NCBI GenBank assembly: GCA_051294905.1 | Contig: CM119384.1 | Location: forward strand, 9,424,001 to 9,488,000 | Direction of reading: 5' to 3' | Source: Botryllus schlosseri | Lineage: Eukaryota | DNA: 64,000 nucleotides | Shown: positions 11,421-56,072 of the stretch, piece by piece | Layout of the letters: each line of letters starts with the position of its first letter | How positions within the stretch are numbered: position 1 is the stretch's first letter | Notes under the pieces: model-generated | Databases searched by the model: none | The model's input: only the letters and a program-made list of their open reading frames with translations | What the model was told of the DNA's origin: nothing | Translations under genes and position numbers: made by a program

Positions 11421-12391
11421 CTTTGCCAACTCTTCTCTGACGCTGAACCTCTCGCGGTCAGCTGGTGACTCGGCAGTCGATTGCAAATCTGAGGCTGCTC
11501 TAAATATCAGTTCGTTGCTCGCGATAGTATGTTGTGAGTCGTGACTGCAGTGTAGTTAGTAACTGTGGCCACGTTATTAGGAAATACCCTAAGGGTGTTG
11601 TGGAATCTTTATAGCGTAACCGTATCAGGAAAGCCAGTAATCTTATAGCTCGGCGACCTTAATTGTCCCGTATGGCCCGGTATGGGTTATTCCTTTGCTT
11701 TAGTGGCATAACGCTAGTAACTTTACCCGATCACGGTTACGGAACCATTGAATTCACCAAACAGCTTAAATGTTGTCTTCACTTATCATGTCTATACGTC
11801 TATACTACACTACCAGCTACAGTTTTACTTGAGACCTGACAGAGCCTCGATATTTTGAATCTTGCAGCAATGTTTTTCTAATATGTATTAACCATTTTAG
11901 GTAGATGGTCTCGGTTCGATATTGTGGTGAGTGGTTTACACGAATAGCTACACAAAATCTATAATATTTCGTAAAATATGGGCGGTTCGATGAGTGCTGC
12001 ATTGCTGTCGCCAAATAGCAAATTGCGCAGTGAGGATTTGGGTAATGCTGGTCATTTGCATAGTCAAGCGATTTCTAGAGTGAAATAGATTTGGCATGGA
12101 TACCGGTATATTGTTTGTTGCGATATTGAGGTTTTGTACCTCAAGATACGATACCTATTTGTAGAATTAGTTCTAGGTTTATGCGGGATTGTCGACAATG
12201 GGGAGCCTCTGACATCATTGTCAATCTTGGCCGAATTTCTATCCACATAATAATGGACCTATACATGTCTTGTATTACTCATCACCCCCTCTTACACCCG
12301 TATATGATCACCCGTCATGCTTTTACTTGTCATTGCTTTGGAAAATAATGCATCTTTACTATCACTTAAACAGGTTGTTGTTTTCAAAAAT
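11421..12391. promoter_or_regulatory. Probable bidirectional promoter / 5' UTR interval between the FucT-like and TMEM53-like genes
   Basis: Divergent start codons 971 bp apart with no recognisable TE between them; transcription start sites cannot be seen. Confidence 0.45.
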
Positions 12392-24752: not shown

Positions 24753-24866
24753 TCACGCTTCTGTCCTGGACTCTGTATCGGTGACTTCTGGAACCTCAGC
24801 TTTTGGAGACGCATCTTTTGGAGCCGCAGCTTTAGGAACCGCATCGTCAGCTTCATCCATCTCCAT
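24753..24866 (-). CDS. Probable terminal exon, acidic cytoplasmic tail (MEMDEADDAVPKAAAPKDASPKAEVPEVTDTESRTEA*)
   Basis: acgttcag acceptor, phase 0, TGA at 24755-24753; AATAAA on the - strand at about 24536-24541. Confidence 0.62.
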   Translation of the reverse strand: MEMDEADDAVPKAAAPKDASPKAEVPEVTDTESRTEA

Positions 24867-27800
24867 CTGAACGTTGAGTGATAATAGTTACCGATTGCAT
24901 CTTACGTATGATTCTAATCCAAAAAGGTGTGCCTCGCAGGGGTGGTCAGTAAGGACGAAAGTACTTTTTCATAGTTATGTATCAACTGTATGCTTTGCAC
25001 AATGCTGGCTTTAGACCATTTCTACTTCAGTGTTTCCACAGGACGTCAAATAACTTATTTTTTCCCATATAAGTAAGGGTGTCGAATCGAAACTTGTTTT
25101 CGGAACAAACGAAGAAACGTTTTCAAAAAAGTAACGACCGTTGGATGTATAACCCGTACATCCCCGTCACTATTTCATTTCATGCTGGTGACGTCATATT
25201 TCGAGATACGATTGTTGATAAAGAATGTTCTTTCCAATTCTCTACTGGTTGCTGACGATTTCCCCTGACGAGTGTCAGCCGACAATATTCGGGTTCATTT
25301 CAATATGAATATACTATTCAGATATAATTTAGATATCACTAGGACAAGTTTTTGCAACTTTTTTACAGCTTCCGGAAGCTTCCTAGATACTCAGAATCTA
25401 TGAGCTATGATATTTTAAGCTGTTTGGGGGGATTTTATAGGGTAATTTTTCTCTATTTTTCATGCCAATTTTTACTGCACCTTTTATCAAATATTGTGTG
25501 ACAATGTTAAGGAGTGATTTAAAAACATGCTATAATCTATTTCTAGTATGATTCTATTATCTTTGATTTGAACAACAATGAGCTATATCAGTGGTTCTCA
25601 ACCTTTTTGTCTTCGCGGACCCCTTTTGGAGTGCCAAGGACCCCGCGGACCCCCAAAACTTTAGTTTAAATTTAGGTCAATTTGGCGAGATAGCGTAGTG
25701 GTATAATCCGCAGCAGCAACAGCACTGGGTTGCGGTTACTCCCGAATACCTACCCATGTTTCGGTGGTTTATCAAAGTTTCTCCTTGCCATCTCATCCAT
25801 GTAAGAAGTGTCTTATAAAAGCCTATAGATGTGGGTCATGATATAAGTCGGCAGCTACGGAATAGAAATGAAGAAAATTGGCTTGGTGTGAATGACCATA
25901 GTAGTTGACAAACACCATGAATACCACAAACAAGCTCAATTATCGTGCAACCGTCATATGTGTTTTACGAATATTAATTTCTGGCTAGTGTCAAATATAG
26001 CAAAAAATTAACATCGAACTATTTATATGGAAATTGGGCTGACGGTAGCGAGTTTTGTAGCTTCATTTCTTGAAATACGTGGTCGTGTCTTGAAAATCCG
26101 ACTCTTCGGTTTGATATGAACGATTGCCGAAAATTTATTTCCACAAATATAGGTGGTGGCGAATGGTATAATAACGGTCACCGACGACCCATTTGAGTAT
26201 GATCGAAGCATATATACCACCAAAATTGAGACTAGGATTTGTCATTGAACATATAACGTCCATCCTAGTCATTTTCATCAAGTAGCTCATTTTGAAGTTG
26301 GTCTGGGATTGTGGTTATGTATATCACCCCAACAAACCTCTCTAAACGGCAATACGTTTTTTTTATCAGTAGGCTATTGGCAATTTAGCAATTAAAATGA
26401 GTTTGCACAGATAAGATATCTCATCTCAGACGGCAATTATGTTGATGTGAGTCATGAAGTTGTAGCTGTAATTAGGCAAAATATCATTTTGCAAGTTTAG
26501 AGGCTTCGCGGACCCCCTGAAAATGCTTCACGGACCCCCAGGGGTCCGCGGACCCCCGGTTGAGAACCGCTGAGCTATATGATGGGTTAAGTGCATCTGA
26601 ATGTTATCTATGACACAATAGTTCAACTTTCCCTACCAAGCACGACCTTGCCCGAACAACATATAAATAGATTGCTATAACAATTCTAACACATTTGAAT
26701 AAAATATTCATATTTATTCCCGAAGCTTTTCGGCTGACCCTCGTCAGGGGATGTCGTCATCAATATTGCGAGAATTCGAATAACTATGTTCAACAACAAT
26801 ATGTATCGCTAATTATGACGTCACACGGAAAATGTACATAATTAGCGATATATATTGCTGTTGAACATAGTTATTCGAATTCTCGCAATATTGCTGACGA
26901 TATCCCCTGACGAGGGTCAGCCGAAAAGCTTCGGGAATAAATATGAATATTTTATTCAAATGTGTTATGATGTTCTGTACTCCTAAGAGTCTCTTTATAT
27001 TAATTCTGTCGTTTAAATTTGGATAGTTTCCCATTTCCCGTAGGCCCAGGCGGGACCGTCAAAAGCTACATTGTCACTGGACCATCCTTTTCAGGCTATT
27101 GATTTGGTTTCTGTCGCCAAGAGTGAGTTTTTCTCTAATTCCTTGGGTCAACTTTGTGCAGATTTAGGGGTTTTTGGGTGTGTTATTTGATTTGTTGTAG
27201 GGAGAGGGGTTCTCGCTACGCTGTTTGGCTTTTTTTTGGGGGGGGGGATTATTCCCGCATTGCGTAATTTGTTTGCTGTGTACCGGTAAAAAATGTAATT
27301 TTTGGCGGTCTCGCCCGTCGCCACACCATCAGTGAAATGGCAAAGTAACAAATTTGACAGCTATGCAGGAACAAGGCTAAACAACGGAACCCTTTCGAGT
27401 ATCTCATACCCTAATAATTACACAGAAATCATTATAAATGCAACTTTTTACTGTACCTTTTGTAAAGTTAAGGGCGGAGATAATAAAGTTTGATTAGCAA
27501 TAAGTCGATTATCGCGTTCGTCAGGATTTATCACCCCATGAGGAAACCGGTTGATCGCAGCACATAACGTTAGTGTTAATCTCATGTTAACAAACCGGAA
27601 TAAACTATAGATAGTTATCTATAAAAAGCTGTCTACACTGCGTACCATTCCTGCGCACAAATATTTCCGATAATGACCGTGCCTGTTTCCTAGGTATAAT
27701 GGCTTCACTAAAAAATCAACGAATTATGTACCCGCCATTGCAGAGCGATATCGATTTCTATAATACGTTCCTTAGCTGTACAGTACGAATTGGACACGAT

Positions 27801-30800
27801 TTTCATTTGGCGATGATGATAATTCCACCTATTGTAGCGGCAGTATTGTTATCTACAGCCTGCTGTTAAGCCGCTTCATTCAACCAATTGACAACTGACA
27901 GCCCTTATAACGCGTTGTCGCATTATGATACAACAGATAACCCCACTTGATTGAAAACTCGGGACACCTCGACTGTAACCATCGCGCCTAACCTGTTCCA
28001 ACTTTATGCGTCGCGATTAGCAGTACATATACTATATAATCACACAATAAGCATGCTTCCGGATCAGCTAACTTTATTATCTCCGCCCCAAGTGCAACTA
28101 TCTCGCGATTTTAGTGCAACAAAAACTTGCCCCAGATATCACACCATCAGTTTCTACTTAGTAAATACTAGTCAGCCCGCAAATATTACCGGATCACAAT
28201 CTGACATATCGACCTTGTCTTAGATATACGGACCGAGGTGTCACATTGATTTTCGTCGGTTGTCTTTTTGTGTTATGTTTTATTCCATTCATCCAGTGTA
28301 CATGCCTCTTATTTACATGTTCTCTAGGTCAGGTTGGGATTCGATGACTATATTCCAAGTCGTTCCGCACCTTCCCCTCTTTTAATTATATCGCAATCTT
28401 GTGGATTGGATGAAAATTTAATAACAAACAGTACCGAACTCTCTGTATTTGACACCGTTACCTAGTTATTCTGCGTTAGTCGCAAATCTGTATTTGTCGA
28501 ATTTGGAATGTGGTCGCCAACTAGAGGGCAGCGATTGACTAAGCGAAATGTCCGATACACCGCCACTTTTCATAGCTACTTTCTCGACTGATTCTAAGTG
28601 ATTTGAATAGCGCGTCTCGGTATTAGGTACATTTTACACGTACATCGGTGCATATCTAACGTATTACTTCTACTTGACTAACTTGAGGATACCATCAACG
28701 GCTATTTCGAACGTTTCTGTGGCTGATATTTCTACTACCAATTATGCCAGGCACCCGACATGGTCCTTCCGTGCTGTCCGCTACATGAATATACGATCGG
28801 TGATAAACATGAATATCACTTCTAAAAACAGTACACATATCATACGTGAATACTGTTGGCTTTCTTTTTCTTCACCACGGCAAAATAGTAAATTCCTCCG
28901 CCAATAAGAGCTGCTGCCGCGACGCTTCCAATCACAATACCAGCAATTGCTCCCGGCGAAAGTCCCTCCTCAGTGACGACCTTCATAGTGACATATCGCA
29001 TATATCAGTAGGTGTTCTTTGATGTGCAGTGTTCGTTATTATTTTTGCCTCACAGACGGATACCTAGTTAAATAGCCATAATGGAGGGTGGGAAATTTCA
29101 AAAAAAAATAGCATGGAGTCTGCTTCTGGAATGGATCAGGTGAGAGCAGGTTATTTTCTTGCCAACGAGTATTAAAAGATTTTTCAGCTTTGGGAATCGA
29201 GATAAGGCCATGCAGATGATGATGATGAGGGTGTTCAGCAACGAAGTTACTATAGGCTTCTATTCGAAATAATTACTCAGGCTATGTCTACTTCTATCTC
29301 TTGCTCTTCTGCTTATGTTATTAAAATTTTGTCAAGTATAAAGTATTTTGCAACATTTCTATCGAATTTCGTCACATAGGCCTGGTAACATGTCTTCCAT
29401 TCCATGCTACGGAAACAGAATATATAATTTCGACAATTAGACGATGTGTCGTTTCACCAAACAAGATCTTAACGTCGGGTCTCGTATTAGGGTAGTGCAA
29501 ATCAACCCGCTGAGATAACAGCGACAGAAGTCAACAGTTTCAGAATGATGACTTCTTAAGAACATTGCTGACTAGCAAAAACCAGTGTCCGGCCCAAGCC
29601 CGTGTATGATCGGGGCAGGGAGGGCATGGAGCGTAAAATTTCAGACAGATATCATTGCGCACCGCCGAGCGGGAAAGCCGCGTAGACCAGTTTTACTTTA
29701 AAATCGTAGGTCTGACTCGGACGTGGATTGACCCCACGACCTACCATTACGAAATGTCGTCGGTTGCGAAAAGTCAACGGAAAAATAGTACGAATGGACT
29801 CACCGTAGCAATAGCGACGTACTCCCCGGGCTCACTACAAATACATCGGATATCGTAGTTTGACTGTAATGAAGCACTGCAACCACCATCACCCCATTCT
29901 CGAGTGGCCTTCTGCCAGCGCTGACAACCTACAGTAGCTTTCTAAAAATAATGAATATAGCCTTGTAATCAGCAGTCAAAATAACGAACTCGGGCATTAT
30001 CGAAGTCTAGTAATAACCACCGATATGACAAGACTGAGACTACACGACTACAAGATGTTTTAGTAATAAGATGGAAATTTTGGAATAATGACGAATTGAC
30101 GGTGTCCATTGTGAAATATTCGACTATGATGATGTCACTATGCCCGATTCCAAAATTGTAGCACTAAAAGCAGTTCGTTTGAAATATTTTCTGGGCTGCT
30201 CGTGGTGTGCTATCAGATTTATCCACACTTTCCACAATGTTACTTGTCACCAGTGTTGGGATCAAGTCACTACCTTCGAGTCACGAGTCATTTCGAGTCA
30301 TTGCCTATTTTGACTCGAGTCAAGTCAAGTCAATCGATTTTCAAAGGTGACTCGAGTCAAGTCAAGTCACTCGATTTTTGGAGGTGACTCGAGTCAAGTC
30401 GAGTCAAGTCAAGTCAAGTCACGAGTCAAGTCACAATTCAAGTCAAGTTGCCTTTTTGAAGTATGGGGCATGATGACGTCATTGCATTTTGATAGCTGTC
30501 TGAAATACAGGGGTCATTGATTTTGAACCGATGTACGAATATAGAGTTAAATATACACGAAAGAAGGCGCTGTATCGCTCACATATGCGTAGAACTGCTA
30601 AACCACAGTTTATAGTTACCAGCCAAACTAGAGAATTGATACGATTTGATAGGATGTGATACATTACGCATTTACAAATCGATATGATGCAATTCGAGCC
30701 TGCGCCAATGGTTGAGGACTGTATAAAATATATTCGAATTCAATTTCATATATTCGAATTCAATTTCAATAACACAAGAGGTTTGGTTAAGGCAAAAACA

Positions 30801-33800
30801 GAGATTAATTACTTTAATATACTAGTTTACGACAACGTGAGCTGTAAGCTTCGATCATGTCGTTTGCGGTCAATTTATTTGTGAGAGAACAATGGAGGCT
30901 CAGTAAAACGCACGATCATTAAATGATTGGTCGCTCTCACGGTTACACCAGCGTTTCGCAAACAATCCGAACATATGCAAGATTCAGTGATTTTTATCGA
31001 CACCGATTACTTGATGACTTGAAATTGACTCGTGAATTTTGCTCCGAGTCACGAGTCAATCCATATTTCTCATACGTCGAGTCAAGTCAAGTCAAGTCAT
31101 TTTAGCAAAGTGACTCGAGTCAAGTCAAGTCATTCGAAAAAGGTGACTCGAGTCATCCCAACACTGCTTGTCACGTATTTACTTTTTATGCCAGGCTAAT
31201 TTCACCTTTTTCAGAAGGTTCAGCAGGACGTTGAATAATCATCTTATAACTATACCATGTAATCGTGATTGAAGCTCTACATTTCGATTGTGTGTTGCAG
31301 CGATAACCGACGTTCGTTCATTCATCTTTTGAGATGTGGTCAATCCATACTGGTCATCGACCTCACCAGTCACGTAGACGATAGCCTACGTGGTCTTCCG
31401 AAAATGCTTGGACAAATATGACATAGACATACCGGCTTGGATTTTTTTTAAATCGACATGTGCATTTTTAGGCAGCCGTGTCTTACCGAAAGGATACGTC
31501 ACATCAGCAGTAGAGGGAAACATGCTACTTGATATAATGCTCCTGTGATGTGCCCGCTGGCCGAACGCCAAAGCATGACATTCAATAGCGTCCGTACCCT
31601 TGCGTTGAAAATCACTAAGAATGTCGCAACTGACAGGGACGCGGACGACGATCAAGCCTGCTGTCACGCCAACTGCGGTGACATGAGATGGATATACTCA
31701 TTGCTCAACGCCGCCACCACCACCAACAACAGCACGTTACAAAGTGAGCCAGTCCCGCATGGTCATGGGTGAAACATATACCTGCTGCATTATGGCATAG
31801 TCGCCGATCGCAATTCTACCGTACCGCTACTGCTATACACTGCAGCAACATACAATCATTCCGCTTACTGGCTGGTTATTCTCGAAATTGAAAACAAATT
31901 CTTGACTGCTGGGACTCCCGGTCACAATACTGGCAGAAAGCACGGTTCTTTGCAACACAACGTTGCCCGGCAAATTGCTGAAAAGGACGTCTGAAGTCAT
32001 ATATGCGCGAAAAGATACCCGATAGGTTCCTGCAAAATGAAAATTAAGGTTTTTGGTATCGATACAGAACCACAGTTATTCAGCGAAGCCTTCTGCACGG
32101 GGTGTATACTTGGTTAATGAAACCACGCCGCGGTCCCATATAGTGACTTCATAATTATAATTGTCCGGGAAAATACAAAATCAATCACGAAATACTCCTA
32201 TTCGAACAGATTACAGTTATGACGAGGTTAAACGGAATCTCTTACCCACTCCTGTTCCTGATGCAGTCATGAATGTACCCGAGTCGGGTTGGGCGGTCTC
32301 AACCCGAAGACCAGCGGCCGTTAGGTCGCTTGCTGAGGCCCAGCCCTCTTCTGCAGCGAACGTGGCTTCTGAGAATGGTTTAAAACAAGTTTAAAAAAAT
32401 ATCTAATCTGCATGAGGTAACGGTCAGTTGCTGGCGTCTGGCAACTATTATTCTACCTACATGAACAATTGAACATAACATAAACACGTCAGGATAGAGT
32501 TTGTAAATGAACAGCACGTCGGAAATTGACATGTGGGTTTCATTCACGTGTCCTCCTGAGGTAGTCATTAACGAGCTATATTTATCGTCATTCAGTAGAC
32601 AACTCAAATAATTCCGATGCAGATTCTATACTTCAAGAGTTTTGAAAGCCGTAAAATATCACCTTCACCATATCAAATAACTCTGAAGGAACTGAATCAG
32701 TAACAAGTACATTAGTTCACCCCCTTTCGATGCGGAAATACTGAATCAGAGTTTAAAGCTGTGGCATTCGAGATCAATTTATGGTGAACTCCCGATACGT
32801 AGTACCTCGTCTATTTTCCCAACCGACGATGGGTTGGAATAGGGCACATCGATAAGTCGTCATGGGAATGTCAATTGCCAAATACGGCGCAGCCGACAGG
32901 GTGAGAATATGATATGGAGGGGACTGCAATAGCAATGATACGATGTGTGACTGCGTTCATGCTGCGTTCATGCTCGAGTATATTAAGCTTCGAGTCGAGC
33001 CGAGTATTCGAATATCACTAGTTATGACGTCATAACAGTATGAATGATGTGAAAGTTCAAATATGTACCGTTTATGTATAGATAACTAACCTCATAGCAA
33101 CCTCTCCTATTGCTCAGCAATAAGAGGCATACTGCTTGCCGAAGCGTAACCACTGGGAGTTACGAATCTATCCAGGTTAGTAATCTATAGTTTTTGTGAC
33201 TACAAATAATTTAATGCCAGTTCTACATTACATAAAAGATTATTTGGTACTTTTTGGCTGGACCTAATTTGTTGCACTTTGTACAGTGCTTCGGGTTGAT
33301 CGCGACTGCGCAGATAAGTCATTTACACTGGCGTGTGTATATAGCTTTACTACATGCGTCGTATGCTGCGATACGAAAAATCGCTACTCGAAAAATGTTC
33401 TAAAATTTCGAAATTTCTAAAATTTCTATAATTACTACTTGATTCAGATTACAGTAGTCGAACCATTGTGCACAAGCACAGCCCTACTTACCACCCGTGC
33501 CGGAAATGCTTACAACAGCAAGCGCAATATTGGTATCAATATCAATAAACTCATCCTCCGCAGCTCTTGAAATAGGCGCCACGTCGACAATTGCTGACAA
33601 TTCGTCGATAGAGGTCAAAATTCTGTAACGAAATGAAACAATATAAGCCAGTGGTTCTCAACCGGGGGTCCGCGAAACCTTGAAATTTGCAAAATGGTTG
33701 GTAGCCTAATTTGCATTTCTTTAAATTAGGGAAATCACGGGGCAATTTCGCTCCATAGCTGCTAAAACTGGAGCTACAGAAATCGCTTTGAAATAACAAA

Positions 33801-36800
33801 AGTCTACCCTATTTCTGCACAAATATTATGATGATATTTTCAAGGAAAGACATTTTGTTGACGCAGGTAATATTTTCACAAGACAGCTGACGGTTGCACG
33901 ATAATTGCGTTAAATTTTGACTAAAACTGGAGGGGTCAGCGGCGGTCCGTGACGGTTCAAAAGGGTCCGCGAAGACAGAAAGGTTGAGAAACATTGGTAT
34001 AAGAAATCAGCATATGTGTTTTCCGACTATAGGTTTTGTGGAATTTTTACATCGTTGAAAATCGGACGACATTCATATGTGAATTGCAGGATATTCTATT
34101 CTCTCACAACCAAAACGTATAAGTATGACCTTCATACTGAACATGTCGTTATCAAAATTGGACATCATTTTAACTATGGACCAACCCTGGAGCATATAAA
34201 GATGTTTGAGATCAACTTACTCATTTGACTGGTCGTTCACTCTCGCTTTGGAACCCGCATCTATCACTTGGAGGAGGTTGTTATAAACGTCAATTGATTG
34301 GCCTGCTTGCTATATAAACAGAAACGGAAATATTATGTAATGTCCTTAAGGCGTATGACGCTAAACCGTGGTTGACAACAGAGGAGGTAAGCTGAAGTAT
34401 TAGTAAAACCATAAATGTCTAGTGTCTAGTCAATTACAGGTACAAGTATAGTAATTTCTAAAACTTTTTCGAGTAGAAGCGACAAATTAAAAGTCTGAAA
34501 GGCACTCAAGTAAGTTATTTCAAAACGTGGATTTGATCGAGGTCATATTAGTTTGACTATGGGCGATTGCTTTCATCAGAGCACGGGGTTGTAATGACTC
34601 GAGTCGCGATTTTTCATTAACTCGAGTCCTTTTCTTAATCACGAAAACGACTTGCTTCGACTTGAGTAACTTGGTGTGTTGACTTGTATTCGAGTCATTG
34701 CGCATGACTCGAGACATTCTATATGACTTGATTCAAGTCTCGGGCTGACTGAAATTACTTGACTCAAGTTAAAACTATAAACGTTAGATTGACAATTTCA
34801 CTAGACACCTTGGGACTTCGTTACTACCCTGTTACAACACCCATTGCGAAAACACATTCATTTTTACTTGAGACTTTTCGTGTGCATGTTATCATGGTAT
34901 TTAGCAGATTCAAAATAAAAACCAAGATGACAAAGTATGTTGAATGTACTGATAAAAGTGATGCAAACTTTTTCCAAAATCTCTTTCCAATTTTCAAAAT
35001 CCAAAATGTAAAAGGTTGATGGTTTTGCCCAAAAACTAATTTAAGTTGAAATCGAAGTAGTCTAAAACCACAGTTTCTTGAGTACTACTTGCTTACCTCC
35101 TAAAAATCAAAAATTTCAATACTGATCGCTAAGGCAAGATTTTGTTGCGGTCGAATCCGTGAAAAGTTACACTTATTTTTGAGGTTGCAGTAAAACGTTG
35201 CATTTATTTTTCCCAAAAGTTGCACTAAAAGTGGCATTTATGGACAAGCTCCTTAAAATTATTAGGTTTTTATATACTAGAATTGATCCGTATCTAAGGC
35301 ACTGTAGCAAAACTCAGTGTTGGCGACAATGACAAAATCAATAGCCTAATAAAATTGACCCAGTGAAAATATAATTTTCGGCGATCTAGCCTGAATGTAC
35401 GTCAAATATTTCCAGTAAAAAGTTGGTTGCATGAAAAATCGAAAAAAGTTGAAAAAAGTTGCGTGAAAAACATGGAGAAAGGTTGCAAAAAGTTCCAATA
35501 TAAGAGTCCTCCAAACAGCTTAAAACAACATATCACATAACTTCTGAGTATTTTGGAAGCTGTCGGAAGCTGTAAAAACAGGTTTCAAAAATTGCAAAAC
35601 TTGCCCTATACTGATCACCTCTAGGAGCAGATGAGAGCAGCACAAACAGCCAGCGTATTGGCCATTGTTGTGTAACCGATTGAACATTCACACTCTCACT
35701 CTAGTGCGCACTTGCTCCTGAGCTGCTCAGACGGCATAGTTGCGTCACAATACCAAACTCCGTTACATTGCAACATTCGAGAAATTTATATTTTCGCAAT
35801 CAGTGCCGCAGTAGCTTTCGATGATTGATACCCGTTTTATCAAATTCAATGCTCGGCAAGCCGGTCTAAAATCACCGTCAAATTGCCATTGACCAAATGG
35901 AAAGTGGGACGTAGACCAATTTTACTGAGCCGTGAGATTTGCTTGTGTCCACGCCATATAGGACACTATGCTGTAACTGCGCAAAGTCATGTCCAGCCCA
36001 CATGTCGGAAGCCTTTCGCATGCAAAGAGCCATGTGAGCTCATTTACTGTGCAATAGAACGACATCAACCGTTGAATCGCTAAAATTATGCCAGAACTAT
36101 TGGTATTTCTTGATTAGAATAGGCTGTAAACTGTAAAAATCGCCTAGTATGCAAAATATGTGAATATGTTGGTAATTATATAATTGATATGTTTTTTTTA
36201 TGAATGGAATGTAATAAGATTGCGAACACCATAATCTCCTTCTCAGCATATACGTCTTACACTCACATTCGCATCTATTGATGAGCTAGTAGATATGAAA
36301 TCCGTGGTGGTTGTGACTGCGTAGTCAACTTGTGTGGGAGTAGCAGTCTCCGGATCCGAAGCAACAATAGCGTATGGTAGTTGTTCTTCAGACGTCAAGT
36401 CCCCAGCCCCAGCGCTACAATCGGTATACTGGAACTCGTCGTAGATTCCAGAAGCCTCATTACAACGTGCTATAGCTATGGGTTGTTGCATGTCTAAAAC
36501 GCATCAACATTATCATTTAAAATTGTGAGTGATATGATTGGGGCTGTTTAGGGGAGAGCCTTCTTCTTTGCCCTACCTTTCGGACCTCCGCGTACATTTT
36601 CAATGTCGAAAACAAATAGACAGCTATATCGGAGCGCCCGGGGACACTAATAGAGCTACGTATACATCGTAACGATTTCCAGTGCAAATATAGGTCCTAT
36701 ATCTATAAAAGACGGGCCTGATCGCCGAGAGCGAAATTCATTGAACAATGATCTGGGGTGGGAAACACTGAGTCCGTCGCAAATGGCTACAAACGCTATC

Positions 36801-39800
36801 AGTTACATCCGGTGGAGAACTCACTTTTACATATGAACAATTGAACATATATTGTCCTGTATACGTTACCTGGAACAACACACGATTCAGTACATTTCTC
36901 GGTCGATTGCGTCCAAGATCCTGCGTCGGCGCCGGAAAACGTCAAATTTCTCAGGTCAGTGTCGGGGACGTACACGTATGTCGAATTACAATCGGCGACG
37001 TCACGGATAAGAGACTCATTTCTGGTCTGCGTCGTCGCACTGCAGGCAACTGTGTCAAGTACATGTCAATTGCAAATGACTTGTTGCATATAGACAGTGA
37101 AATGCCAAATAGGTCTTCTTTACACTCATAGGTATTATAAAGAACAAAGAGAAATGAAATAGCTATACAGTGTACTCAAAGTATACGGTAAAAGCAGTGA
37201 TATCAAATTCTAGCCGCGTCAGTAGAAGTTTGAGTACACATATTAACAACCATCAAACAATCTTGTGACGCACTGCAGCACCCCAAAAGTTGTACAAGTA
37301 AGCGACCATTTATATTAAAATGAAATATCACTAACAAAGCATTATTGATGCTCTAATGTCGGATATACCTACGCTGGGTTGTTAAAACATTGAATATCTC
37401 ATGCAATTTCTATTTCGTTTTGGTGCGGCTCGTCTAAGAAATACAGAGTGGGGCTGAAATAGCGATCATGTAGGTATTTGCAGAGGTGGGCAGTAACAAA
37501 ACACTGCTTGCTTTTGACATTTTGGATTTTGCGAAGTATAGTAAAGTGTTTGTAAAGTAGTTTTTGCCATTGATTTGTGTCACTTTTATGAGTGAAATTA
37601 TCACATTATAGGGGAATATTTATATCTAAACATGATTTGAGCAGAAGTTCACGGCATTACTGAAACTTCTACTTGAGTGGCAAAACTGGCTACTTTGACC
37701 ACCTCTAGATATTTGTGTTGCATTAGACATGCGCATTATGCACTATAATTCGCATTTTTTAAATTCAGTGAAATTTCCGTTAGTTGGGTAGCAGTACCTT
37801 TTGGCCCCCTGACCCTCATTTACTCGTTATACGCGTGCCTCCCCCTAAATTATTCACCAACGTCGGGCCGAAATCGTGTATGGACATATCACTGGTTTGT
37901 TAAACGTGTGTTTGTTAACGTGAATATATAAAACGCGGGTAAGCATTAAAATCCAAATTCGTTTTTGGTCGACTAAACCAAACACGAAACACGACAGTGG
38001 CAGAACGAAGCTTCGGTGCTAGATTACGAAAAATTGTAATTGACATTCGCTACTTGTTCAAGGGGTTATGTGTTCAGGCGATACTGCCACTTCTATAGGA
38101 ACAGTTTGCTAAGAAAAACTATTTACTTTTTGCACATAGAATTTTGATGAGTTGAAGTATTTTTTTGTTTCCATTTTTATGGTTGCTATTGTCATAAGAA
38201 CCGCTTGTACTCTGTGTCACGGCTACTGAATCTATTTTTGAAGATTGTGCCTATTTGTAGCGCTATTTGTCATCTTACGACTTCGAACGTAGCCACATGC
38301 GATTATCTGTTAAAAGTATGCGACCGCATGACAGATCTGCTACAGGGTATCAAATGCTGTGGTGCAGTCACCGAAATACGGAGCCATTACACGCACCTTT
38401 GTCTCCACAAAAGTCGCCTGCGTAGCCTGGTGAGCACTCGCAATCGTAATTGCTGGCGGTTCCAATGCATATCGCGCCATTTTGGCAATCATTATCCAGA
38501 CAGTTATCTGCAGAAATTAGCAAATAATTACATGGATGTTGTGACTTTGTTAAGATTTTGGCTCATCGTCCATGACGCGTCCTGAACACTGATTCTCAGC
38601 CGAATATAAAACCGGATATTGAACATTTTTTGCACCCAAAACCAGAGGCTGTGTGTACCTGTTTGACAAGAATCACCAGAGAAGCCCGGGAGGCAGATGC
38701 ATATTGAATTGCCTTCAACCACGGAGCACGTTCCGCCATTTACACATTCTTTCGTACACTCTGAAAAGAAAAAGAAAAGTCGATAACGGTATGCGGTGCT
38801 CCAGCGAATCAACGGAATGTCGTATCCCACCTTCTGTCCCGCCATCTCCGCTGAACGTGGTTTCTACAAAACAAGAAATACTTCAACAAATCAGTTGATG
38901 CGATCCAACTATATGGAACTTGGTATTATGGTTAAAGGGTGTATCGGTTTGGATGATCTCAAATTACTTCGGTCAAACGAGCAGATGTTTGAAAGCATGA
39001 GATTTGTATCTGACGGAGTCGTCGATTAAATGAATCCTCGCATCTGTAAATGGTTCGTTTTAATATCTATATGCTGGCATATCGGTAGGCAACATAGCAT
39101 AGCCCAATTCCCAATCTTTTTCGACTCATTGCCCCCTTATCAATCTCGGCACAAATTTTATCCCCCCTCCCCATATTTACGGATCCGAAAAAGATGACAT
39201 CTAAACGGGGGAGGTTCATTCACCTAACTCTAATCGCTGGTGAAATGACTTTAAAAAGGTCATTTCCGAGTAAGTACTCGTAAAAACGGTGTCTGCGACT
39301 ACTTTCCGTTGAGTTGACCTTTTTTGCGTCATAATTAGCCGTCATCACATGCATTTTTCCGCTTTGTCAATTAAATGTATCTCACTGAACGTTATAGCAT
39401 TTTAGCCCCTACCGCCCCTTTCGTATTTCCGCTCCCTTGCATCTCAAAATCACCCATTGGGGAGGGGGGGCGATATCGCCAACGTTCGAACCATTAATAT
39501 AGCCTGTAATACCCTATATAGTGACCATACTACAGGGGTTGGCATATTTTGAGCATGACGGTCGTATTCAGAATATGAATCGGTTAGTATAGACTAAGTT
39601 ACAATTATATACCAAGACATAAAGGCGCAGTGTGAGTGTGCAGTGGAATGATGAGCGCAGTGTGTAAAACGGCAGCAACGGTAGCTGGTTCGAGCCTCGA
39701 ATCCTCCAAGATAGGTTGTGGAAGCTACCGAGGTCTTGTTTATATATATCGTCTGCTATCGGCGTAACATACTTTATGTCCAGGTTGTGTCGTCTAAAGC

Positions 39801-42800: not shown

Positions 42801-44579
42801 CCGAAATTACATTCACCGGTACTTTCGTGAAATCATGTTGGGCACTCCATATCCACTGTGCGCGAAGCGCGACGAAAATTCTGGGCTCTACTCAATATTT
42901 ATGAAAATTAAATATTGATACTCCTTGAAAACAGCCCCAAAATTCCTCTGGCTATCATCCTGATTGGAGGATTAAACTACTTCTATTTGACAAATTGAAA
43001 ATAGCTAAAAGTAAGTAAGTAGATCACAAAATATTACGAAGTAGAAGTAGCGCGAAATTAGATATACTTGAGTAAGTACCTAAGTAGCGGAAAACTACTT
43101 GAGTACTTTAAAAAAGTCGAAGTACTTCGTTACTGACCACCTCTGAATAAATCATTGTTGTCTCAAACATTTCACATCAGTAGCTTTATTTAGCAGCATT
43201 GATTAGCTACAAATATGCTCACTGCCTATCATTATAGGATGCTTGGTTTCAAGTGGTGTTTCGAATTATAGCCTTTAAATCCCATGGTCGGGTTTTCTTT
43301 TGTTAGGTCAAGATTAGCTTGGGTTCTCTTTTAATGACTGGCCATCATGGCACTATAGCGGATTCGATTCTCGCCGCATGTGTTCCACTCTAATATGGTC
43401 ATGCCACCAACGCGGATTGTTACTACACAACGTATGGCGTTATCGACAAAGTATAGTCAGATAATCCCCCCTCCCATATTCTCGCGTGGTCCCCAAGGTC
43501 AAGTAAAACGCATGAGACAATCAGACTTGCATCTGCCAAAGGTGTATGAGACTTACCCATTCCCGCTGTAGCATTCTGCGCATCTGAAAATATTTCGTAA
43601 ACGTTGTCGTAGGAAGCAGTAACTGTATCTGTATGTATATGTATTAATGGAGCTTATCGCCTTTTTAGGACTTGTGCTCCACGACACGAATTTCATAATG
43701 TTCAAAGGTCTTCGCTTTTGTATTATTGAGAACGTCTTCCAGTCTCTCTCGCAGTCATTCTTCATTCTCTCTCGCTCCCATGCGTCCGCATCGAGATCTC
43801 TGCTGCCGACTTTTGCACGGCTCACTTTCAGTCTGGGCTTTTCAATGCACTACCGTAGTAGTGAGGTCGGCGATGAGGAGCCCAGAGAAACCTCCGACAC
43901 ATAGACGTTGGTCAGAACCGGGATTCGAACCCAAGTCCATTGAGGAAGCAGTAACTAATCCATACTAGATTTGGGAATATGGAGACTTACTGTCTCTGTA
44001 GGAAGTTCGTTCCCATCATTCCGGGAATATTCCAGAAAGCGAGGAGGGTTAAAACCTCGTTAAAATCGTATTCAATATACTCACGGAACAATCAAATTTG
44101 TATAACAGCTAAAGCTTTGGTAAAAGTCTATGAGACTTACCCGTTACAGCTGTAGTATTCTGCGCACCTGTAAATAATTCGTAGACATTTACGTACAGAG
44201 CAGTCACTAATCTATACAGTATTGGAATATAGAGATCTCCTATATATGTAGGAAGTTCGTTCGCAGTATTCTGGACACATTCCAGAAAGCAAGGATGGTT
44301 AAAACCTCGCAGAAATAATATGCAACATACAGTATTCATTTCAATCAATAAGTCGATCTTTCCACATCGCTTCTCGTCATACTTCTGTGAACTTACTGGC
44401 TTAATAGTTTGTTGCTGCAGCTGTCAATTTTTTCTTTGAGCAATATCCGTTAATATTCGTTTACCATTTTGAAATGAGATAGGTACAGTGTGGGCTTAAA
44501 TCAAATTCAATTAATCAAGTTTTTTTTGTTTGATATATTACACGCAGTTTCAATAGAGTGTGGCGGTTGTTATTTTCAT

Positions 44580-44617
<38 letters not shown>

Positions 44618-50600: not shown

Positions 50601-53600
50601 AGTGTCAAACAAATCTTATGGCGCAGTCCGAAGTTTCTGTGACGCCGTGAATCGTTAGTAAATCAAAGTGACCCAACCCCCTTTCTATACTTTCTTCTGA
50701 ATATGTCCTGCTTGTTGTAATCACGAAGGATCGATATCCTGGTCCGAGGAATATGACGATCGTTTTTCAGGGCTTATCAAGCTATATGAGGGACGGTTTC
50801 CTTACAAATGTTTACTTTTAGAAATATTGAAATGGATTAGTCCATGTTGAAAGAAAGGAAGTCGAACGGTTTTTATCATTGTAGTGAACGAAGAAAATAT
50901 ATTTTAGAAGTGGAGGTCCTTCGGAAAAGAAAGCCGGAGAGCTCGCTTATATATTGCGACGGTTTGCGACATCACTTGATGTAATTACGACTGTACCAGA
51001 TTTCCTTTTCTATCATGCAAAATTGTCAAATGAAGCTATGGGTAAAAGCAAATTGAAAGGCCCTTTTTAAAAACCATATACACACTCTAATTGTCTGGCA
51101 AAGCGCCGAGCTATTTCGAAACCACAATGTGCTAGTGTGCCGCGAACTATTTTTCTCTTTGGAAGGGTGCCGGGAGTACAAAATGGTTGAGAACCACTGC
51201 ATTACACCCATGTTACCATGTACCAGTTCACACGCTCAAGTGACAAAAACCTATATTCAGCAAAATCCAATCTTGACCAACAGCGCAACTCTTTGGCTGT
51301 TGCGATGATGAATGTATGGAGTAGCGCCCTCCCTTCCGAAACTGTACTACGCGTTTAAGTTTGCTACTTTTCAAAAGTAAAGTAGACAAACCAGATCAGG
51401 CTTCGCAGGCTCGGTTTTACTAGCGTCTTAGGCCAATTATGCCATATGCCTGGCCGTTATCTCAGGCACGAAGCCAGCCGAAAAATGAGGGGGGGTTGAA
51501 ATAAATGGATGGGTTTCGATTGTTATCGAATTTACTAATATAGCATCAATTCATTAGGGTTAAGTATATGCATAAATAACGATTATACAACATACTCGTG
51601 TTATACGCGTATGATAAGCTTGTCCACGTGTCCGGAAGTGCTGTTAATTAGCGACTGCCTGATCTGTCGTGAACAGTTAATATACACGCACTAATCAACG
51701 CGTCGAACAATTAAAGACGCCCGCTTTTCAATGCGTTTTACGTAGCCTAGGCGACGATTCGCGCAAGTCAAAATGTACGAGTTGTTATGGAATATGTGCC
51801 ATAATGACGCCGATTGCAGGTGATTCAAACCTTACTTCTTTTATAACTCAAGGCTTGACACACAGCTTCTGATTGTTATGTTCAAGAATTAGCGATCGAT
51901 TCCACATGTGCGCACACGTCGCACATGTTTGCGGCCATCCGATGTCATTCAGTTTCGAGATGTCACTCTTTAATCACAATCGCTAATCAGCATATACCTA
52001 ACTGCATTTTATCCAAGCCATCGGGAAATAGGAGCCAAAGCAAGGTAGACCCGAGACGCGGTATGGTTAGGCTAGCGATATCTTTCGTACTAGGCCTATT
52101 GCAGATGAGATTATGTAGGCAAGAGATGATATCGTGCGCACCAAACCAATGCAGATGCGATTATGTAGGCCAGCAATGATATCGTGCGCACCGGGCCTAT
52201 TGCAGATGCGATAATTAAAACCAGCGGAACTGGGCTTGTTGGAGACGTGATAGATCAGGCTAGCAACGATTGCCGAGCGCGCGCCAATGAATGACCTAAT
52301 TTCGCAATCATCTCAGCGGGAGATCGTGTCGCATTACATTGTGCAGTTCACTGCGCACGGACGAATCTGGCAAATAATTGGCAACGCGCCTTCCGTTAAT
52401 TGGCCGCGCGCAACACTATAATACCACTTATTGAATTGTAACCGAGTATTAGCGTCAGAACGGTCATTTGAAAAGGACGGGGTTTCACGTGGAGGGAGTT
52501 TCGCGCTTCCAAACCCCCACTTGGCTACGCGCCTGGTTATGTTTCTTTAGCTTCATATGACTACATTATTCGTCGTGATTATAAATATTTTTTCTGTTAT
52601 GACTGGCAACTAAAATATATACGGAAGGCTAAACTCAGTCAATTAATGATCTTAAGTTTCCGATCTTACATACGGCACATACATAACTGTTCATCTGACT
52701 TGAACTGCACTTATATGCAGAAATATAAATATATATATTATGTTTATATGACAGCTTCATTATTACAATCAAATTAGTATCTCAATAAATACCCGTAGTT
52801 GTGTCGACGAAAGGGTCCGAACGAGCAATTGTTGTAAGGACATAATTAGCACATAACGCAGCTGGGGTAGTCACGGAAGCATCTGCGAACAAAATAAGAT
52901 ATGGTGTCGCTTATTTACTAGTTTTCGTACTCCACATAGGAGACTATAAATCATTTGTTTTCAACGTTCCTATGGTGAGCGTGCATTACTTAAAACATGA
53001 AAGCTCAGGACCTTCGCCCAGACCTATAGTTCTGGATAACCACTAAAAGCTGATTACTAGAAAAGGTCAGAACCTTCGGGGTTACCACCTTACGACCGCC
53101 CTCCTACGGATTGAAAACCACTGTAATAAACCCTAAAAGCCTGAAGCTGTGTGTTCCACTAGTGTGAATGTAATCAATTTCTATTCGCGACTGTTGCTAC
53201 GTACTAGTATACTCTGTATACTCACCTACAATGTAGACTTGCAATAGCTTTTCATCTGAAAGAGACCTGCAGTAGTAATCTCCAGAATCTTGCACAGTCG
53301 CGAAGTTGTAAAAGTACAATCGACCATCCAGTTGTTCAACAGGCTTCCCCGATGGAAACTCAGGTACCGTTGTTCCGCCATTCCACCACGTTAAATTTTG
53401 GTTTGAAACCGACCGACAGATCACATTGGCGCCAGTGCCAAGAGGAATAACTATACATCCACCTTCCGCATCACCGTAAAACGAAAGGTCGTCTGTCGGG
53501 AATACATTGTCGTTTGTTAGTTGCATTAATATAAATATAATATTTCAAGATGAAACAACCCGAACTCAGTTCGATACAAATCTGCTGAACGTTCTATTCG

Positions 53601-55225
53601 GAAATTTCTCTTACATGCTGATCAGTGATAAATTAGAATGATTTTTTTGACAAAATTTTGACTTTTTTTGACATGTCAAAAAATCGCCCTATACTGATAA
53701 TAATATGAAATGTTGTTACGTGTAGGCCATGGATATTGCCTTGTTGGTAATAAATATTGCCGTTTAGCTGTATAAAAATAATAATATACTCCCGGTAATC
53801 ATTTGTCAACTAGGTCGTTTCAATTCATTGTCGCGCAATGCCTTTTGGAATACCAGCAGAATCGAGTGATAATGTCAGAAGTATAGGGCTCCCGGGCACA
53901 ATGATTCTAGTACTCAAATTCGAATCGACTATTAATTGTAATGATTGGAGTAAAGTGGTGAGAGACGAATTTTTCCGAGTACTGATACTGACTAACATTT
54001 TTCAACGATAATTGCAGTCTTGGTGCTTTTTTCGTGGAAGCCTTGAAACATCAATTGCTCTTATTACCGCAGTACGGAGCTTAGCAACTTAGCCGCAGTG
54101 GTTCTCAACCTTTTTTTAGACACGCCCCCCTTTTTGATAGTGAAAAATTTCGCGCCCCCCTTATCGTCATATCACAAAATCCAACTGGGATGCTAGCAAC
54201 CCCAACAGATTGTTTGGTGGTATGGATGGTTATGAATGTTGATGAGAGAATAAAAATATATGAAATTGGATCTATATAGAGAGAAACCCGCGTGCATTGT
54301 AGGCAAATCGCGCAAAGCGCAAAAAATTTTTTCAGTTGACCGCTTCTTCGCGCCCCCTTCAGATGTTTCACGCCCCCCAAGGGGGGCGCGCCCCCCAGGT
54401 TGAGAACCCCGGACTTAGCGGAACTAATATTTCTGTGAAGCCGTTATCAACACGCAGCATTGTCAGCACACAGTCCAACGAAGTCGATGTCCAAAGTCCA
54501 ATGGTCGACGAAATGCCAAATTATATCTTTATGTGGTGTAGAAGAGGCAATAGTTTTTGTGGTCGCATATATAAGAGGCACACATATGAACTTTCCATAT
54601 AATTCACACTATTATGACATCATAATAGGTGATGATCAAACACTCGACTCGAAGACTCCGTGGATTTGTAATCCATACTCAATTCAGAACCGAATCAGGA
54701 AGGTACTCGATTTTGCCCTCGCCTAGTAGGCAGTAAACATAAAATTCCAACGGGGACCCCATCGAAAAGGTGACTAGCTAATTAATAGCAGGTTGAAAGA
54801 ATTGTGACATGGCGGTATAGACGCATAGTACTATTTAAGCTTACTGTAGAAGTTGTTGGAGCAGTGATAGACGCTGTCGCTAATCGACTTGTAATAGCTC
54901 AAGTTCGTCGAGGCAAACGATGCTAGTCATATCCTAACAGACAAATGTCATTGTGAGTGACCAGACCATATACAATGTAAATGCGCTTTCGGCACCACGC
55001 ATTTGACAAGTTAGTCACGTGCCGCACCTGTCCCCCTAATAATTTCATATTCAACCGCAATATCATCGCCATATAGTTTGTGAAGATGAGTGTTGAAATC
55101 CGGCCTAAAAGTTGTGAAAAAAAAAACGATCCATACTAACCTTCAGCAACGGCTTGACGAAAACACCATGATAGACATGATATCGTTATCATAGCGAGTA
55201 CGGTATTGCTGATCGTAGAAGTCAT
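24753..55225 (-). CDS. Gene model (15 exons, about 612 aa): single-pass type I membrane protein with SP-Ig-microexon stalk-EGF-HormR-GAIN-GPS-1TM-acidic tail; adhesion-GPCR-like ectodomain lacking 7TM
   Basis: Exons 55225-55141, 53492-53226, 44167-44141, 43583-43557, 38863-38831, 38760-38659, 37049-36870, 36493-36267, 34309-34221, 33622-33492, 32368-32246, 32029-31869, 29941-29804, 28980-28846, 24866-24753 join in one frame (1839 nt) with AG/GT ends. Further unrecognised exons in the long introns cannot be excluded. Confidence 0.72.
25589..26572. mobile_element. hAT MITE (CAGTGGTTCTCAACC TIR) with nested SINE at about 25685-25930
   Basis: Perfect TSD AGCTATAT. Confidence 0.93.
26688..26966. 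mobile_element. Near-perfect 279-bp palindromic MITE, TA-flanked
   Basis: Arms of about 128 bp with few mismatches around a short loop; a related fragment lies at about 25255-25315. Confidence 0.88.
28846..28980 (-). CDS. Single transmembrane exon (GLSPGAIAGIVIGSVAAAALIGGGIYYFAVVKKKK)
   Basis: Type I TM signature followed by a poly-Lys stop-transfer; tgaag acceptor (weak tract), gtatga donor, phase 0-0. Confidence 0.82.
29804..29941 (-). CDS. GPS-motif exon (CQRW...WGDGGC...CICSEPGEYVAI)
   Basis: Four Cys and two Trp in GPS spacing; atttttag acceptor, gtgagt donor, phase 0-0. Confidence 0.88.
30251..31166. mobile_element. hAT MITE (CAGTGTTGGGAT TIR, GACTCGAGTC arrays) in the GAIN-GPS intron
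   Basis: Perfect TSD CTTGTCAC. Confidence 0.93.
31869..32029 (-). CDS. GAIN-B-like exon (TYRVSFRAY...LF...VLSASI...FVFNF)
   Basis: ttttgcag acceptor, gtaagc donor, phase 1-0. Confidence 0.82.
32246..32368 (-). CDS. GAIN-like exon (ATFAAEEGW...GTGV)
   Basis: attctcag acceptor, gtaaga donor, phase 1-1. Confidence 0.78.
33492..33622 (-). CDS. GAIN-like exon (ILTSIDELSAIV...NIALAVVSI)
   Basis: tcgttacag acceptor, gtaagt donor, phase 2-1; NIAL-x-V resembles the GAIN A/B junction. Confidence 0.8.
33649..33996. mobile_element. hAT MITE (CAGTGGTTCTCAACC TIR)
   Basis: Flanks atataagc / gtataaga. Confidence 0.82.
34221..34309 (-). CDS. GAIN-like helical exon (QAGQSIDVYNNLLQVID...)
   Basis: tttatatag acceptor, gtaagt donor, phase 0-2. 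Confidence 0.75.
36267..36493 (-). CDS. HormR-like second part plus start of GAIN-like region (AIARCNEASGIY...TDC...)
   Basis: gttttag acceptor, gtgagt donor, phase 1-0. Confidence 0.82.
36870..37049 (-). CDS. HormR-like domain exon, first part (ACSATTQ...GSWTQSTEKCTESCVVP)
   Basis: cacag acceptor, gtaacg donor, 180 nt phase 1-1, open frame. Confidence 0.8.
38659..38760 (-). CDS. EGF-like domain exon (CTKECVNGGTC...CICLPGFSGDSC)
   Basis: Six-cysteine EGF spacing; long pyrimidine tract plus cag, gtacac donor, phase 1-1. Confidence 0.92.
38831..38863 (-). CDS. 33-nt microexon (E)TTFSGDGGTE
   Basis: ttgttttgtag acceptor, gtggga donor, phase 1-1, 70-nt intron to the EGF exon. Confidence 0.55.
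40507..42322. mobile_element. Large foldback element (TAGG...CCTA termini, about 340-380-bp inverted arms) with a nested MITE
   Basis: Arms about 40507-40890 and 41985-42322; flanks gtgtacgc / ctgtacgc; interrupts a repeat seen intact at about 19360-19600. Confidence 0.82.
41138..41331. mobile_element. Small MITE with CAATGTTCCCTCTAA TIRs and TGCGCA repeats
   Basis: 15-bp perfect TIRs. Confidence 0.88.
42540..43145. mobile_element. Partial CAGAGGTGGTCA-family hAT element
   Basis: Ends tgaccacctctg; body similar to about 17620-18110 and 10140-10470. Confidence 0.78.
43557..43583 (-). CDS. 27-nt microexon (D)AQNATAGM
   Basis: attttcag acceptor, gtaagt donor, phase 1-1, N-A-T sequon; paralog of 44141-44167. 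Confidence 0.7.
43625..43942 (-). mobile_element. SINE (B-box head GGGTTCGAATCCC, TACATA-like tail), possibly 5'-truncated
   Basis: 14-bp TSD AGGAAGCAGTAACT at 43611-43624 and 43943-43956. Confidence 0.85.
44141..44167 (-). CDS. 27-nt microexon (G)AQNTTAVT
   Basis: atttacag acceptor, gtaagt donor, phase 1-1, N-T-T sequon. Confidence 0.7.
44583..44614. repeat. (CT)n microsatellite
   Basis: Direct reading. Confidence 0.95.
47200..47505. mobile_element. hAT MITE (CAGGGGCTCCCAACC / GGTTGAGAACCACTG)
   Basis: Flanks gtgtaaag / gtgtaagg; inverted homolog at 54096-54412. Confidence 0.88.
50138..50270. repeat. Three copies of a 32-bp unit (tcgaattataagcataaccaattaaccatcca) with an (ATCC/ATTC)n expansion
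   Basis: Direct reading. Confidence 0.85.
52092..52215. repeat. About 2.5 copies of a 50-bp tandem repeat
   Basis: tgcagatg(a/c)gattatgtaggc...atgatatcgtgcgcacc repeated. Confidence 0.85.
53226..53492 (-). CDS. Immunoglobulin-like domain exon
   Basis: ANVIC...LTWW...DGRLYF...QDSGDYYC; ctaac branch-like motif with cgacag acceptor, gtgagt donor, phase 1-1. Confidence 0.9.
54096..54412. mobile_element. hAT MITE, same family as 47200-47505
   Basis: CAGTGGTTCTCAACC start; acttagc occurs in both flanks. Confidence 0.85.
55141..55225 (-). CDS. Signal-peptide exon (MTSTISNTVLAMITISCLSWCFRQAVAE)
   Basis: ttattttcag acceptor 1 nt before ATG, gttagt donor, phase 1 matching the Ig exon. Confidence 0.75.
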
Positions 55226-56072
55226 GCTGAAAATAACCAGATGTATATATTATCAAGTTAACAGCTTTGGTTGCAATTCACAACATATATATTATAGGTT
55301 ATATATCTAATGATTTTATTACCGATATACTGATGGTGTAAATGGGAAACATTGTACACGTCAAATATCCGGAAAGTTTTTCGTAAGAAGCAACAATGTT
55401 GCAGACAACACCGCATGAAGTCTTATGGGAATGTTGCAAGTTAGCCTACTCTTTCAACGTTAATTGTAATTTCAAGTTGATTTTTTGCACTGCTTTATAA
55501 TCTCCGAAAATATACGAAATATACCACCTACATCACCTATTCATTAGAAAAGTTCCCACTCAAGAATTTGTTTATGCCTTCAACACTTCAATAGCCTATA
55601 TAAGCTCCGAAGCATATAGTATAATTTACTTATGTTTATGGTTGGTGGTATAGTGGGTATTCATTCAATTCATTTATTTCTAACATTGGATTACCTGATT
55701 TTTTCCCAACAAAATATCTAGCTTTTTATACAGTCTGCCTCAAACATCTGCAAGTTCTACAATGTACATTATACATAATATAGCCTACTCTTGCGATACC
55801 ATCGTGTGCGATTTTGAACGCAATGTCTTAAATACGCCAGTATACCTATACTACCTCTTCAGATCAAAATTCAATATTACGTTTTGGCGGCCCACTGTTT
55901 GCTTATATTCATTACAAACATCAACCCCCTGTGTGTATAGCAGCTGATTGCACATGCACATACTGGCAACACCTATAAGACCGCGGCGGCCTGCATGGGC
56001 TCGAAAGTAGCGTGACAATTCATCGCAGCAGTTGCCGACTCGTTACGATTTTCTGATGACTCAACTTGACTC

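Follow-up and report, generated by a model that had tools for sequence, protein, structure and literature searches.

The window analysed here is a 64,000-nt stretch of the Botryllus schlosseri genome (assembly GCA_051294905.1, contig CM119384.1, positions 9,424,001 to 9,488,000), free of N and with a GC content of about 40%; all positions below are counted within it. Between 55225 and 24753 of the minus strand, 14 GT-AG exons with matching phases join into a 1794-nt coding sequence with zero internal stops, which encodes a 597-aa protein. The predicted protein displays, in this order, a signal peptide, an immunoglobulin (Ig)-like domain, a stretch encoded by two microexons, a pair of EGF domains, a module with six Cys, an acidic linker of Thr/Ser type, a compact GAIN-like region that ends in a GPS motif, one transmembrane (TM) helix, the sequence KKKK and 46 aa of tail. 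HormR-GAIN-GPS ectodomains normally run straight into the seven-transmembrane (7TM) domain that adhesion G-protein-coupled receptors (GPCRs) possess, and GAIN also precedes the multi-pass region of polycystin-1 proteins. We consider it likely that the locus represents an expressed gene dedicated to a type I membrane glycoprotein whose ectodomain is of the adhesion-GPCR type and which lacks the 7TM unit.

The exon joints on which this architecture depends were looked for in Logan contigs of the RNA runs X1 and X3, which come from two studies, and in raw RNA-seq reads of X19, which come from a third. The joint between the GPS exon and the TM exon (29804>28980), which skips 28981-29803 with GT..AG borders on the minus strand, is contained in a 1380-nt contig of X1 (depth 172) and in a 1463-nt contig of X3 (depth 31), and the junction that a first-pass annotation of this DNA had predicted from the letters is therefore seen in transcripts of two studies. 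The joint that follows, from the TM exon to the tail exon (28846>24866), is found in contigs of both runs, with depths of 441 and 127, as well as in 8 raw X19 reads with 7 start points. Past 29941 the X1 contig continues, as a loose end, into sequence that, read as its reverse complement, corresponds to the final part of exon 32029-31869 (...FVFNFENNQP); thus the junction 31869>29941 is also present. Upstream of the GPS exon, the X3 contig extends over 1214 nt, a length that agrees with an exon chain reaching the Ig exon, and of the words sampled from 53200-55300 X3 contains about 0.06, a value which matches an overlap of about 160 nt with the Ig exon and is a rough consistency check, not proof. 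At the other end, RNA depth extends beyond the stop codon to at least 24250, as a 3' untranslated region would. Expression was detected in several studies.

A hydropathy scan of the 597 aa detects two hydrophobic segments only, the N-terminal signal-like segment and residues ~524-551, the latter being followed by KKKK. Within the TM exon hydropathy reaches up to 2.15, and its Pfam matches are generic type I TM families only (Podoplanin, CD99L2), with no 7tm_2. In agreement with the single type I helix, the KKKK and the tail of about 40 aa that had been read from the sequence before, only 46 aa come after the TM segment. Downstream of the TM exon, over 28.8 kb, the minus strand shows no series of hydrophobic open stretches, and the ten most hydrophobic of its open stretches give no Pfam 7tm_2 match. 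An open stretch at 11223-11555 of the same strand has a signal-peptide-like start and is then Cys-rich; it is probably the first coding exon of a downstream neighbour gene, and the locus is therefore bounded at ~11.2-11.6 kb. The 7TM domain that in adhesion GPCRs (class B2) follows directly after GAIN/GPS is thus absent from the protein: no transcript is seen in which the GPS exon is spliced to 7TM exons, and the route taken is from GPS to TM to tail with its stop codon. With no 7TM domain, the protein would have no G-protein coupling of its own.

The same data bear on whether a conventional adhesion GPCR gene could yield the 597-aa protein as a 1TM splice isoform, with the TM and tail exons forming an alternative 3' end and the 7TM exons being unrecognised or lying outside the window. 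Adhesion GPCR genes commonly yield 7TM-less isoforms (bioRxiv 10.1101/2023.01.11.521585; PMC13197933), the TM exon has weak splice sites, and contigs show that one form is present, not that other forms are absent. Nevertheless, the 28.8 kb downstream offer neither a hydrophobic exon series nor a 7tm_2 match before the signal-peptide exon of another gene at ~11.4 kb, the only joints seen at 29804 and 28846 lead to the TM and tail exons, and these are dedicated spliced exons, whereas in Cirl the single-TM form results from a retained intron after TM1. We regard this explanation as quite unlikely.

The identity of the exon preceding the TM exon was addressed by sequence, language model and fold. 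It has the four Cys and two Trp of the GPS motif at canonical spacing (C-x2-W-x6-W-x4-C-x11-C-x-C), followed by S-E-P-G-E-Y-V-A-I-A. Pfam GPS (PF01825) is its sole family match and is sub-threshold, with 14.9 bits for a cutoff of 22.5 (E 0.041), while PDB sequence searches with the exon and with a two-sequence GPS profile gave noise only. In the language-model comparison, the exon has GPS clusters as neighbours (27 of the top matches, score 0.87). AlphaFold2 (AF2), applied to the 46 aa aligned with a single relative, predicts five strands with a mean predicted local distance difference test (pLDDT) score of 84.8; in the GAIN crystal structures of 2012, the GPS motif reportedly forms the last five strands of GAIN subdomain B. 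Searched against the PDB with Foldseek, the model matches BAI3 (4dlo, TM-score 0.60, root-mean-square deviation 2.4 Å over 43 columns) and also CELSR1 (8vy2) and BAI2 (8oek), and the alignments fall at the GPS ends of these proteins (BAI3 814-864, CELSR1 2421-2470). Among the top 30 Swiss-Prot entries of the AlphaFold database (AFDB), ~17 are ADGRG3/G5/G7/G1/E5/E4P/F4, Cirl and PKD1L2/L3, with TM-scores of 0.57-0.68 where unrelated proteins score <0.4; shape searches of the AFDB clusters and the ESM Atlas return similar adhesion GPCR and PKD1L GPS matches, with top probabilities of ~1.0. Since the query is short, the individual structural E-values are weak and it is the enrichment that counts. 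As judged by three independent lines that converge, namely the language model, the AF2 fold and the structural matches, exon 29804-29941 is a GPS motif, as it had been called in the first reading.

Because the GPS regions of PKD1L2 and PKD1L3 count among the best structural matches, and because the PKD1-family protein SpREJ1 of sea urchin combines GPS with one TM segment (PMC1934368), the gene could be assigned to the PKD1/REJ lineage instead of the adhesion GPCR lineage. The 46-aa GPS model does not discriminate between the two; however, no exon gives a Pfam match to REJ, PKD or PLAT and a tail of 46 aa is too short to hold PLAT, which makes such an assignment very unlikely.

The putative cleavage site differs from that of the family. 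It reads C-I-C-S-E-P-G-E-Y-V-A-I-A, whereas the family has C-x-C-x-H-L-T/S-x-F-A-V-L-M and the tethered-agonist consensus is TxFAVLM, as quoted in PMC12716839; E-P-G stands where the cleavage triad H-L-T/S is expected, and the site conforms neither to the GPS cleavage consensus nor to the tethered agonist. The exon retains two disulfide pairs, both Trp and the hydrophobic pattern of the strands, with the tethered-agonist core altered. Because of the replaced triad, neither autoproteolysis nor a tethered agonist would be expected from this sequence. A relative of the exon, P0001, is a 155-aa open reading frame (ORF) on a 2.5-kb Logan contig (sample SRR25569784), which keeps all Cys, Trp and the EPGEYVA motif at 58-60% identity and reads through the identical intron position (…VATVSSF… as compared to …IATVSPF… here); the exon boundary after the GPS motif is therefore conserved in the genome from which P0001 derives. 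That exon, intron position and EPGEYVA are kept at ~60% identity argues for constraint on the GPS exon. P0001 itself finds only itself in the 5.8-billion set and gives no Pfam GPS match, and a search of the P0001 contig for the antisense ORF of the TM exon, which would have pointed to a conserved TM exon there, returned no candidate.

Altogether, transcripts that run from GPS to TM to tail, the lack of recognisable 7TM exons downstream and the predicted GPS fold make a 7TM-less GAIN/GPS receptor the best reading of the locus. The first-pass annotation had put forward a stand-alone receptor of this type as a possibility, which these data support, while a role as decoy, co-receptor or adhesion molecule, proposed at the same time, is one that we infer.

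The gene model was assembled by script from stop-free stretches and splice-site scans of the minus strand and is detailed in Table 1; the coding sequence starts with the ATG at 55225 and ends with a stop codon at 24753-24755, within the last exon. The in-frame exon chain reported earlier stood, with 15 exons and 612 aa counted at that time; the gap of 15 aa probably reflects one extra small exon or other acceptor choices, and the architecture is unaffected. The ATG of exon 1 is the first one past an in-frame stop and is followed by a hydrophobic core and an A-x-A cleavage-like site, as predicted for the signal peptide that had been proposed; the exon closes with the donor AAG/gttagt. An AG acceptor abutting it at 55226 suggests that an additional 5' untranslated exon may lie upstream. 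Further down, the short exon assigned to putative GAIN subdomain A is the sole open exon with acceptable splice sites that is able to bridge the phases of its flanking exons. A self-tblastn of all exons against the window detects no paralogous exons except the two EGF exons, which match each other, and this too speaks against a hidden 7TM part.

Table 1. Coding exons of the gene in the 64,000-nt window, listed in the direction of transcription.
Feature	Positions	Strand	Description
Exon 1	55141..55225	-	ATG and signal-peptide-like N-terminus, 28 aa; closes in phase 1; predicted from sequence
Ig-like domain exon	53226..53492	-	Phase 1-1; strong donor (TAG/gtgagt), weak acceptor
Microexon 1	44141..44167	-	27 nt; phase 1-1; N-T-T sequon; strong acceptor and donor; predicted
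Microexon 2	43557..43583	-	27 nt; phase 1-1; N-A-T sequon; strong splice sites; predicted
EGF domain 1 exon	38659..38760	-	Phase 1-1; strong acceptor; Pfam EGF/EGF_2
EGF domain 2 exon	38397..38507	-	Phase 1-1; Pfam EGF/hEGF
Cys-rich exon, first	36870..37049	-	4 Cys, 3 N-glycosylation sequons; in-phase splice sites; first part of the candidate HormR
Cys-rich exon, second	36267..36493	-	A-R-C...G-x-Y...Y-x-x-C motif, then acidic Thr/Ser-rich linker; phase 1 to 0; donor AAT/gtgagt; second part of the candidate HormR
Short exon, putative GAIN subdomain A	34221..34309	-	Phase 0 to 2; helix-like sequence; predicted
Putative GAIN A/B boundary exon	33492..33622	-	Phase 2 to 1; helix-like, then strand-like; good acceptor, donor GTG/gtaagt
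Putative GAIN subdomain B exon	31869..32029	-	Phase 1 to 0; strand-like, precedes GPS; 3' end ...FVFNFENNQP
GPS-motif exon	29804..29941	-	46 aa; phase 0-0
Single-TM exon	28846..28980	-	Short linker, hydrophobic helix of 27-28 residues, KKKK stop-transfer
Last coding exon	24753..24866	-	37 aa of tail, acidic and rich in Pro/Lys/Ala, with ...R-T-E-A before the stop; 3' untranslated region runs on below 24753

The modules of the distal ectodomain were examined exon by exon with Pfam, the candidate HormR, which is split by an intron, being submitted as two halves. Both EGF exons score above the Pfam gathering threshold, 38398-38505 with EGF at 33 bits (E 7e-8) and hEGF at E 8e-7, and 38660-38758 with EGF at 22.6 bits (E 1.3e-4) and EGF_2 at 24.6 bits (E 3.4e-5), so that the EGF part noticed earlier corresponds to two domains. 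The exon called Ig before shows the canonical C...W...DxGxYxC pattern, while its Pfam matches (Ig_5/Ig_2/Ig_3, 16-17 bits, E 0.006-0.02) stay below the gathering score. Between these modules, the two putative microexons are near-identical and encode AQNTTAVT and AQNATAGM, with one N-x-T sequon apiece; a 31-nt motif that covers them has exactly 2 copies in the window for a chance expectation of 0, and their inclusion in the mRNA is compatible with the length of the transcript contig.

Several observations weigh against the proposal of a dedicated 7TM-less receptor. With the GPS exon as query, HMMER returned a single match among 1.84 billion protein representatives, P0001, and no full-length protein of such kind. 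The HormR (HRM, PF02793) that had been assigned to the Cys-rich exons received no Pfam, PDB-sequence, language-model or fold support when tested as intron-split halves: PDB sequence searches with both exons gave noise only, the language-model feature search of the first one in the ESM Atlas gave nothing meaningful, its AF2 model by itself was uninformative (pLDDT 37), and the resemblance to HRM is limited to the A-R-C...G-x-Y...Y-x-x-C stretch. We therefore treat the region as a six-Cys module of unproven type. The GAIN-like region is also short. It comprises ~130 aa after the linker and upstream of the GPS motif; from the last Cys of the six-Cys module to the TM segment there are ~230 aa, where HRM-GAIN-7TM modules take 280-330 aa (PMC12716839). 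About 50 aa of these ~230 are low-complexity linker, and the ~175 aa available for a GAIN domain, spread over five exons, are few for one. The GPS motif requires the remainder of the GAIN domain to fold, and for this reason a compact GAIN domain is likely. Of the GAIN-like helices and strands read at first, the GPS end is borne out by its predicted fold, and the helices and first strands are suggested by sequence pattern; the single exons 33492..33622 and 31869..32029 match no Pfam family and the ESM Atlas feature search of the latter gave nothing meaningful. Moreover, the TM exon scores weakly at both of its splice sites (acceptor -2.2, donor -0.6). Finally, in X19 the raw reads cover the TM exon ~13x and the tail exon ~24x and show fixed differences at four positions of the former (28900, 28916, 28919, 28936) and five of the latter, while at 95% likeness zero reads fall on the GPS exon; the 28936 variant also accounts for ~30% of the depth in X1. 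The X19 pattern reflects either a divergent haplotype or a paralogue with the same TM-tail cassette, and since X19 covers TM and tail but not the GPS exon, a second transcript or a paralogue with a common cassette may exist. The value of the finding is further limited by the precedents Cirl-1TM and SpREJ1, and its function is throughout one that we infer.

Part of these points would also be met by a decaying adhesion GPCR remnant, in which the 7TM and the cleavage site were lost and a hydrophobic stretch was exonised by chance, leaving a gene that is transcribed and has no selected function. The loss of the catalytic H-L-T/S, the weak splice sites of the TM exon, the shortened GAIN region and the single ORF fragment in the protein databases searched are all in its favour. 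In contrast, the 14 exons keep an intact frame of 597 aa, the GPS motif has lost none of its structural Cys and Trp and lies in an exon that AF2 folds confidently, P0001 carries the identical substituted motif at ~60% identity and expression is detected in several studies. Decay is consequently an unlikely account of the locus.

A GPS motif followed by one helix is not new as such, since Cirl and GPR126 1TM isoforms and SpREJ1 are known. In Drosophila, 1TM isoforms of Cirl arise by intron retention; they are made as protein and associate with the 7TM form, whose mechanosensory function depends on them, and GPR126 isoforms interact in like manner (bioRxiv 10.1101/2023.01.11.521585; review PMC13197933). 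Like the Botryllus protein, Cirl-1TM (ADGRL/latrophilin) and the GPR126/ADGRG6 1TM isoforms carry a GAIN/GPS ectodomain on a single TM segment with a short intracellular region. They differ in being isoforms of a 7TM gene, made by retention of the intron after TM1, and in keeping a cleavable GPS, whereas in Botryllus the 1TM form is apparently the sole product, TM and tail have dedicated spliced exons and the cleavage triad is lost. SpREJ proteins of the PKD1 family combine REJ, GPS and 1-11 TM segments, with one in SpREJ1 (PMC1934368). SpREJ1 is likewise a dedicated gene with a large modular ectodomain including EGF, a GPS, one TM segment and a tail of little length (PMC1934368, PMC2120838); however, its ~600-aa REJ domain and C-type lectin domains are both missing here, where the ectodomain is adhesion-GPCR-like, with Ig, EGF and a Cys-rich module beside the GAIN region. 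Non-cleaving GAIN domains, such as the uncleaved ADGRB2/BAI2 HormR-GAIN (8oek) and CELSR1 (8vy2), share GPS strands and disulfides without autoproteolysis and are among the best structural matches, but in these proteins the 7TM domain comes next. Predicted amoebozoan receptor kinases (AFDB clusters A0A2P6N330, A0A2P6NUV9, A0A2P6NN84) resemble the gene, by names and positions, in having a GPS-like five-strand unit with no 7TM after it; they are known from automatic annotations only and differ in that their one TM leads into long kinase-type cytoplasmic parts, in an unrelated lineage. What sets the Botryllus case apart is an adhesion-GPCR-type ectodomain that apparently has a gene to itself, in which TM and tail come from separate spliced exons and the cleavage site is disabled.

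Such a receptor may have originated from a member of the adhesion GPCR family that lost its 7TM exons and came to end in a generic TM and tail cassette. Its GAIN stalk would be unable to self-cleave, to shed the N-terminal fragment or to expose a tethered agonist, and its most likely role would be that of a ligand-binding or adhesion subunit acting through Ig and EGF. It could act alone, or pair through its ectodomain with 7TM paralogues and so tune or compete with their signalling, as Cirl-1TM does with Cirl-7TM. The short tail may tether the protein to scaffolds, as it displays CK2-like acidic Ser/Thr sites and a C-terminal T-E-A that resembles a class I PDZ ligand.

A more specific version, which we hold as tentative, is that the 1TM partner subunit, which adhesion GPCRs of flies and mammals produce by alternative splicing, has become fixed here as a gene of its own within a family of such genes, giving an uncleavable GAIN receptor whose sole function would be to pair or compete with 7TM paralogues of the same Ig-EGF ectodomain. 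If this were true, the variant TM-tail reads of X19 would hint at more members with this cassette.

The role of the many 7TM-less isoforms is debated in the adhesion GPCR field, in which the 1TM form of Cirl is required for 7TM function. If the Botryllus gene does encode a stand-alone, uncleavable ectodomain on one helix, it would represent a natural separation-of-function allele, with which roles of GAIN ectodomains that are independent of the 7TM (adhesive, in trans or as co-receptor) could be tested without confounding by G-protein signalling or a tethered agonist. It would also show that lineage-specific expansions of adhesion GPCRs can give rise to non-GPCR receptors.

The last intron of the gene contains two further elements. 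An interspersed repeat at 25177-25630 has very high RNA depth, with X1 reaching ~40,000 at 25235-25431, and numerous loose ends lie at 25318-25320, 25589 and 25628-25630; Rfam and tRNA scans of this highly covered repeat gave no family and no tRNA. An inverted repeat, with arms at 26689-26808 (-) and 26846-26983 (+) that encode a nearly identical peptide (RYILLLNIVIRILAIL...), is probably a transposon remnant.

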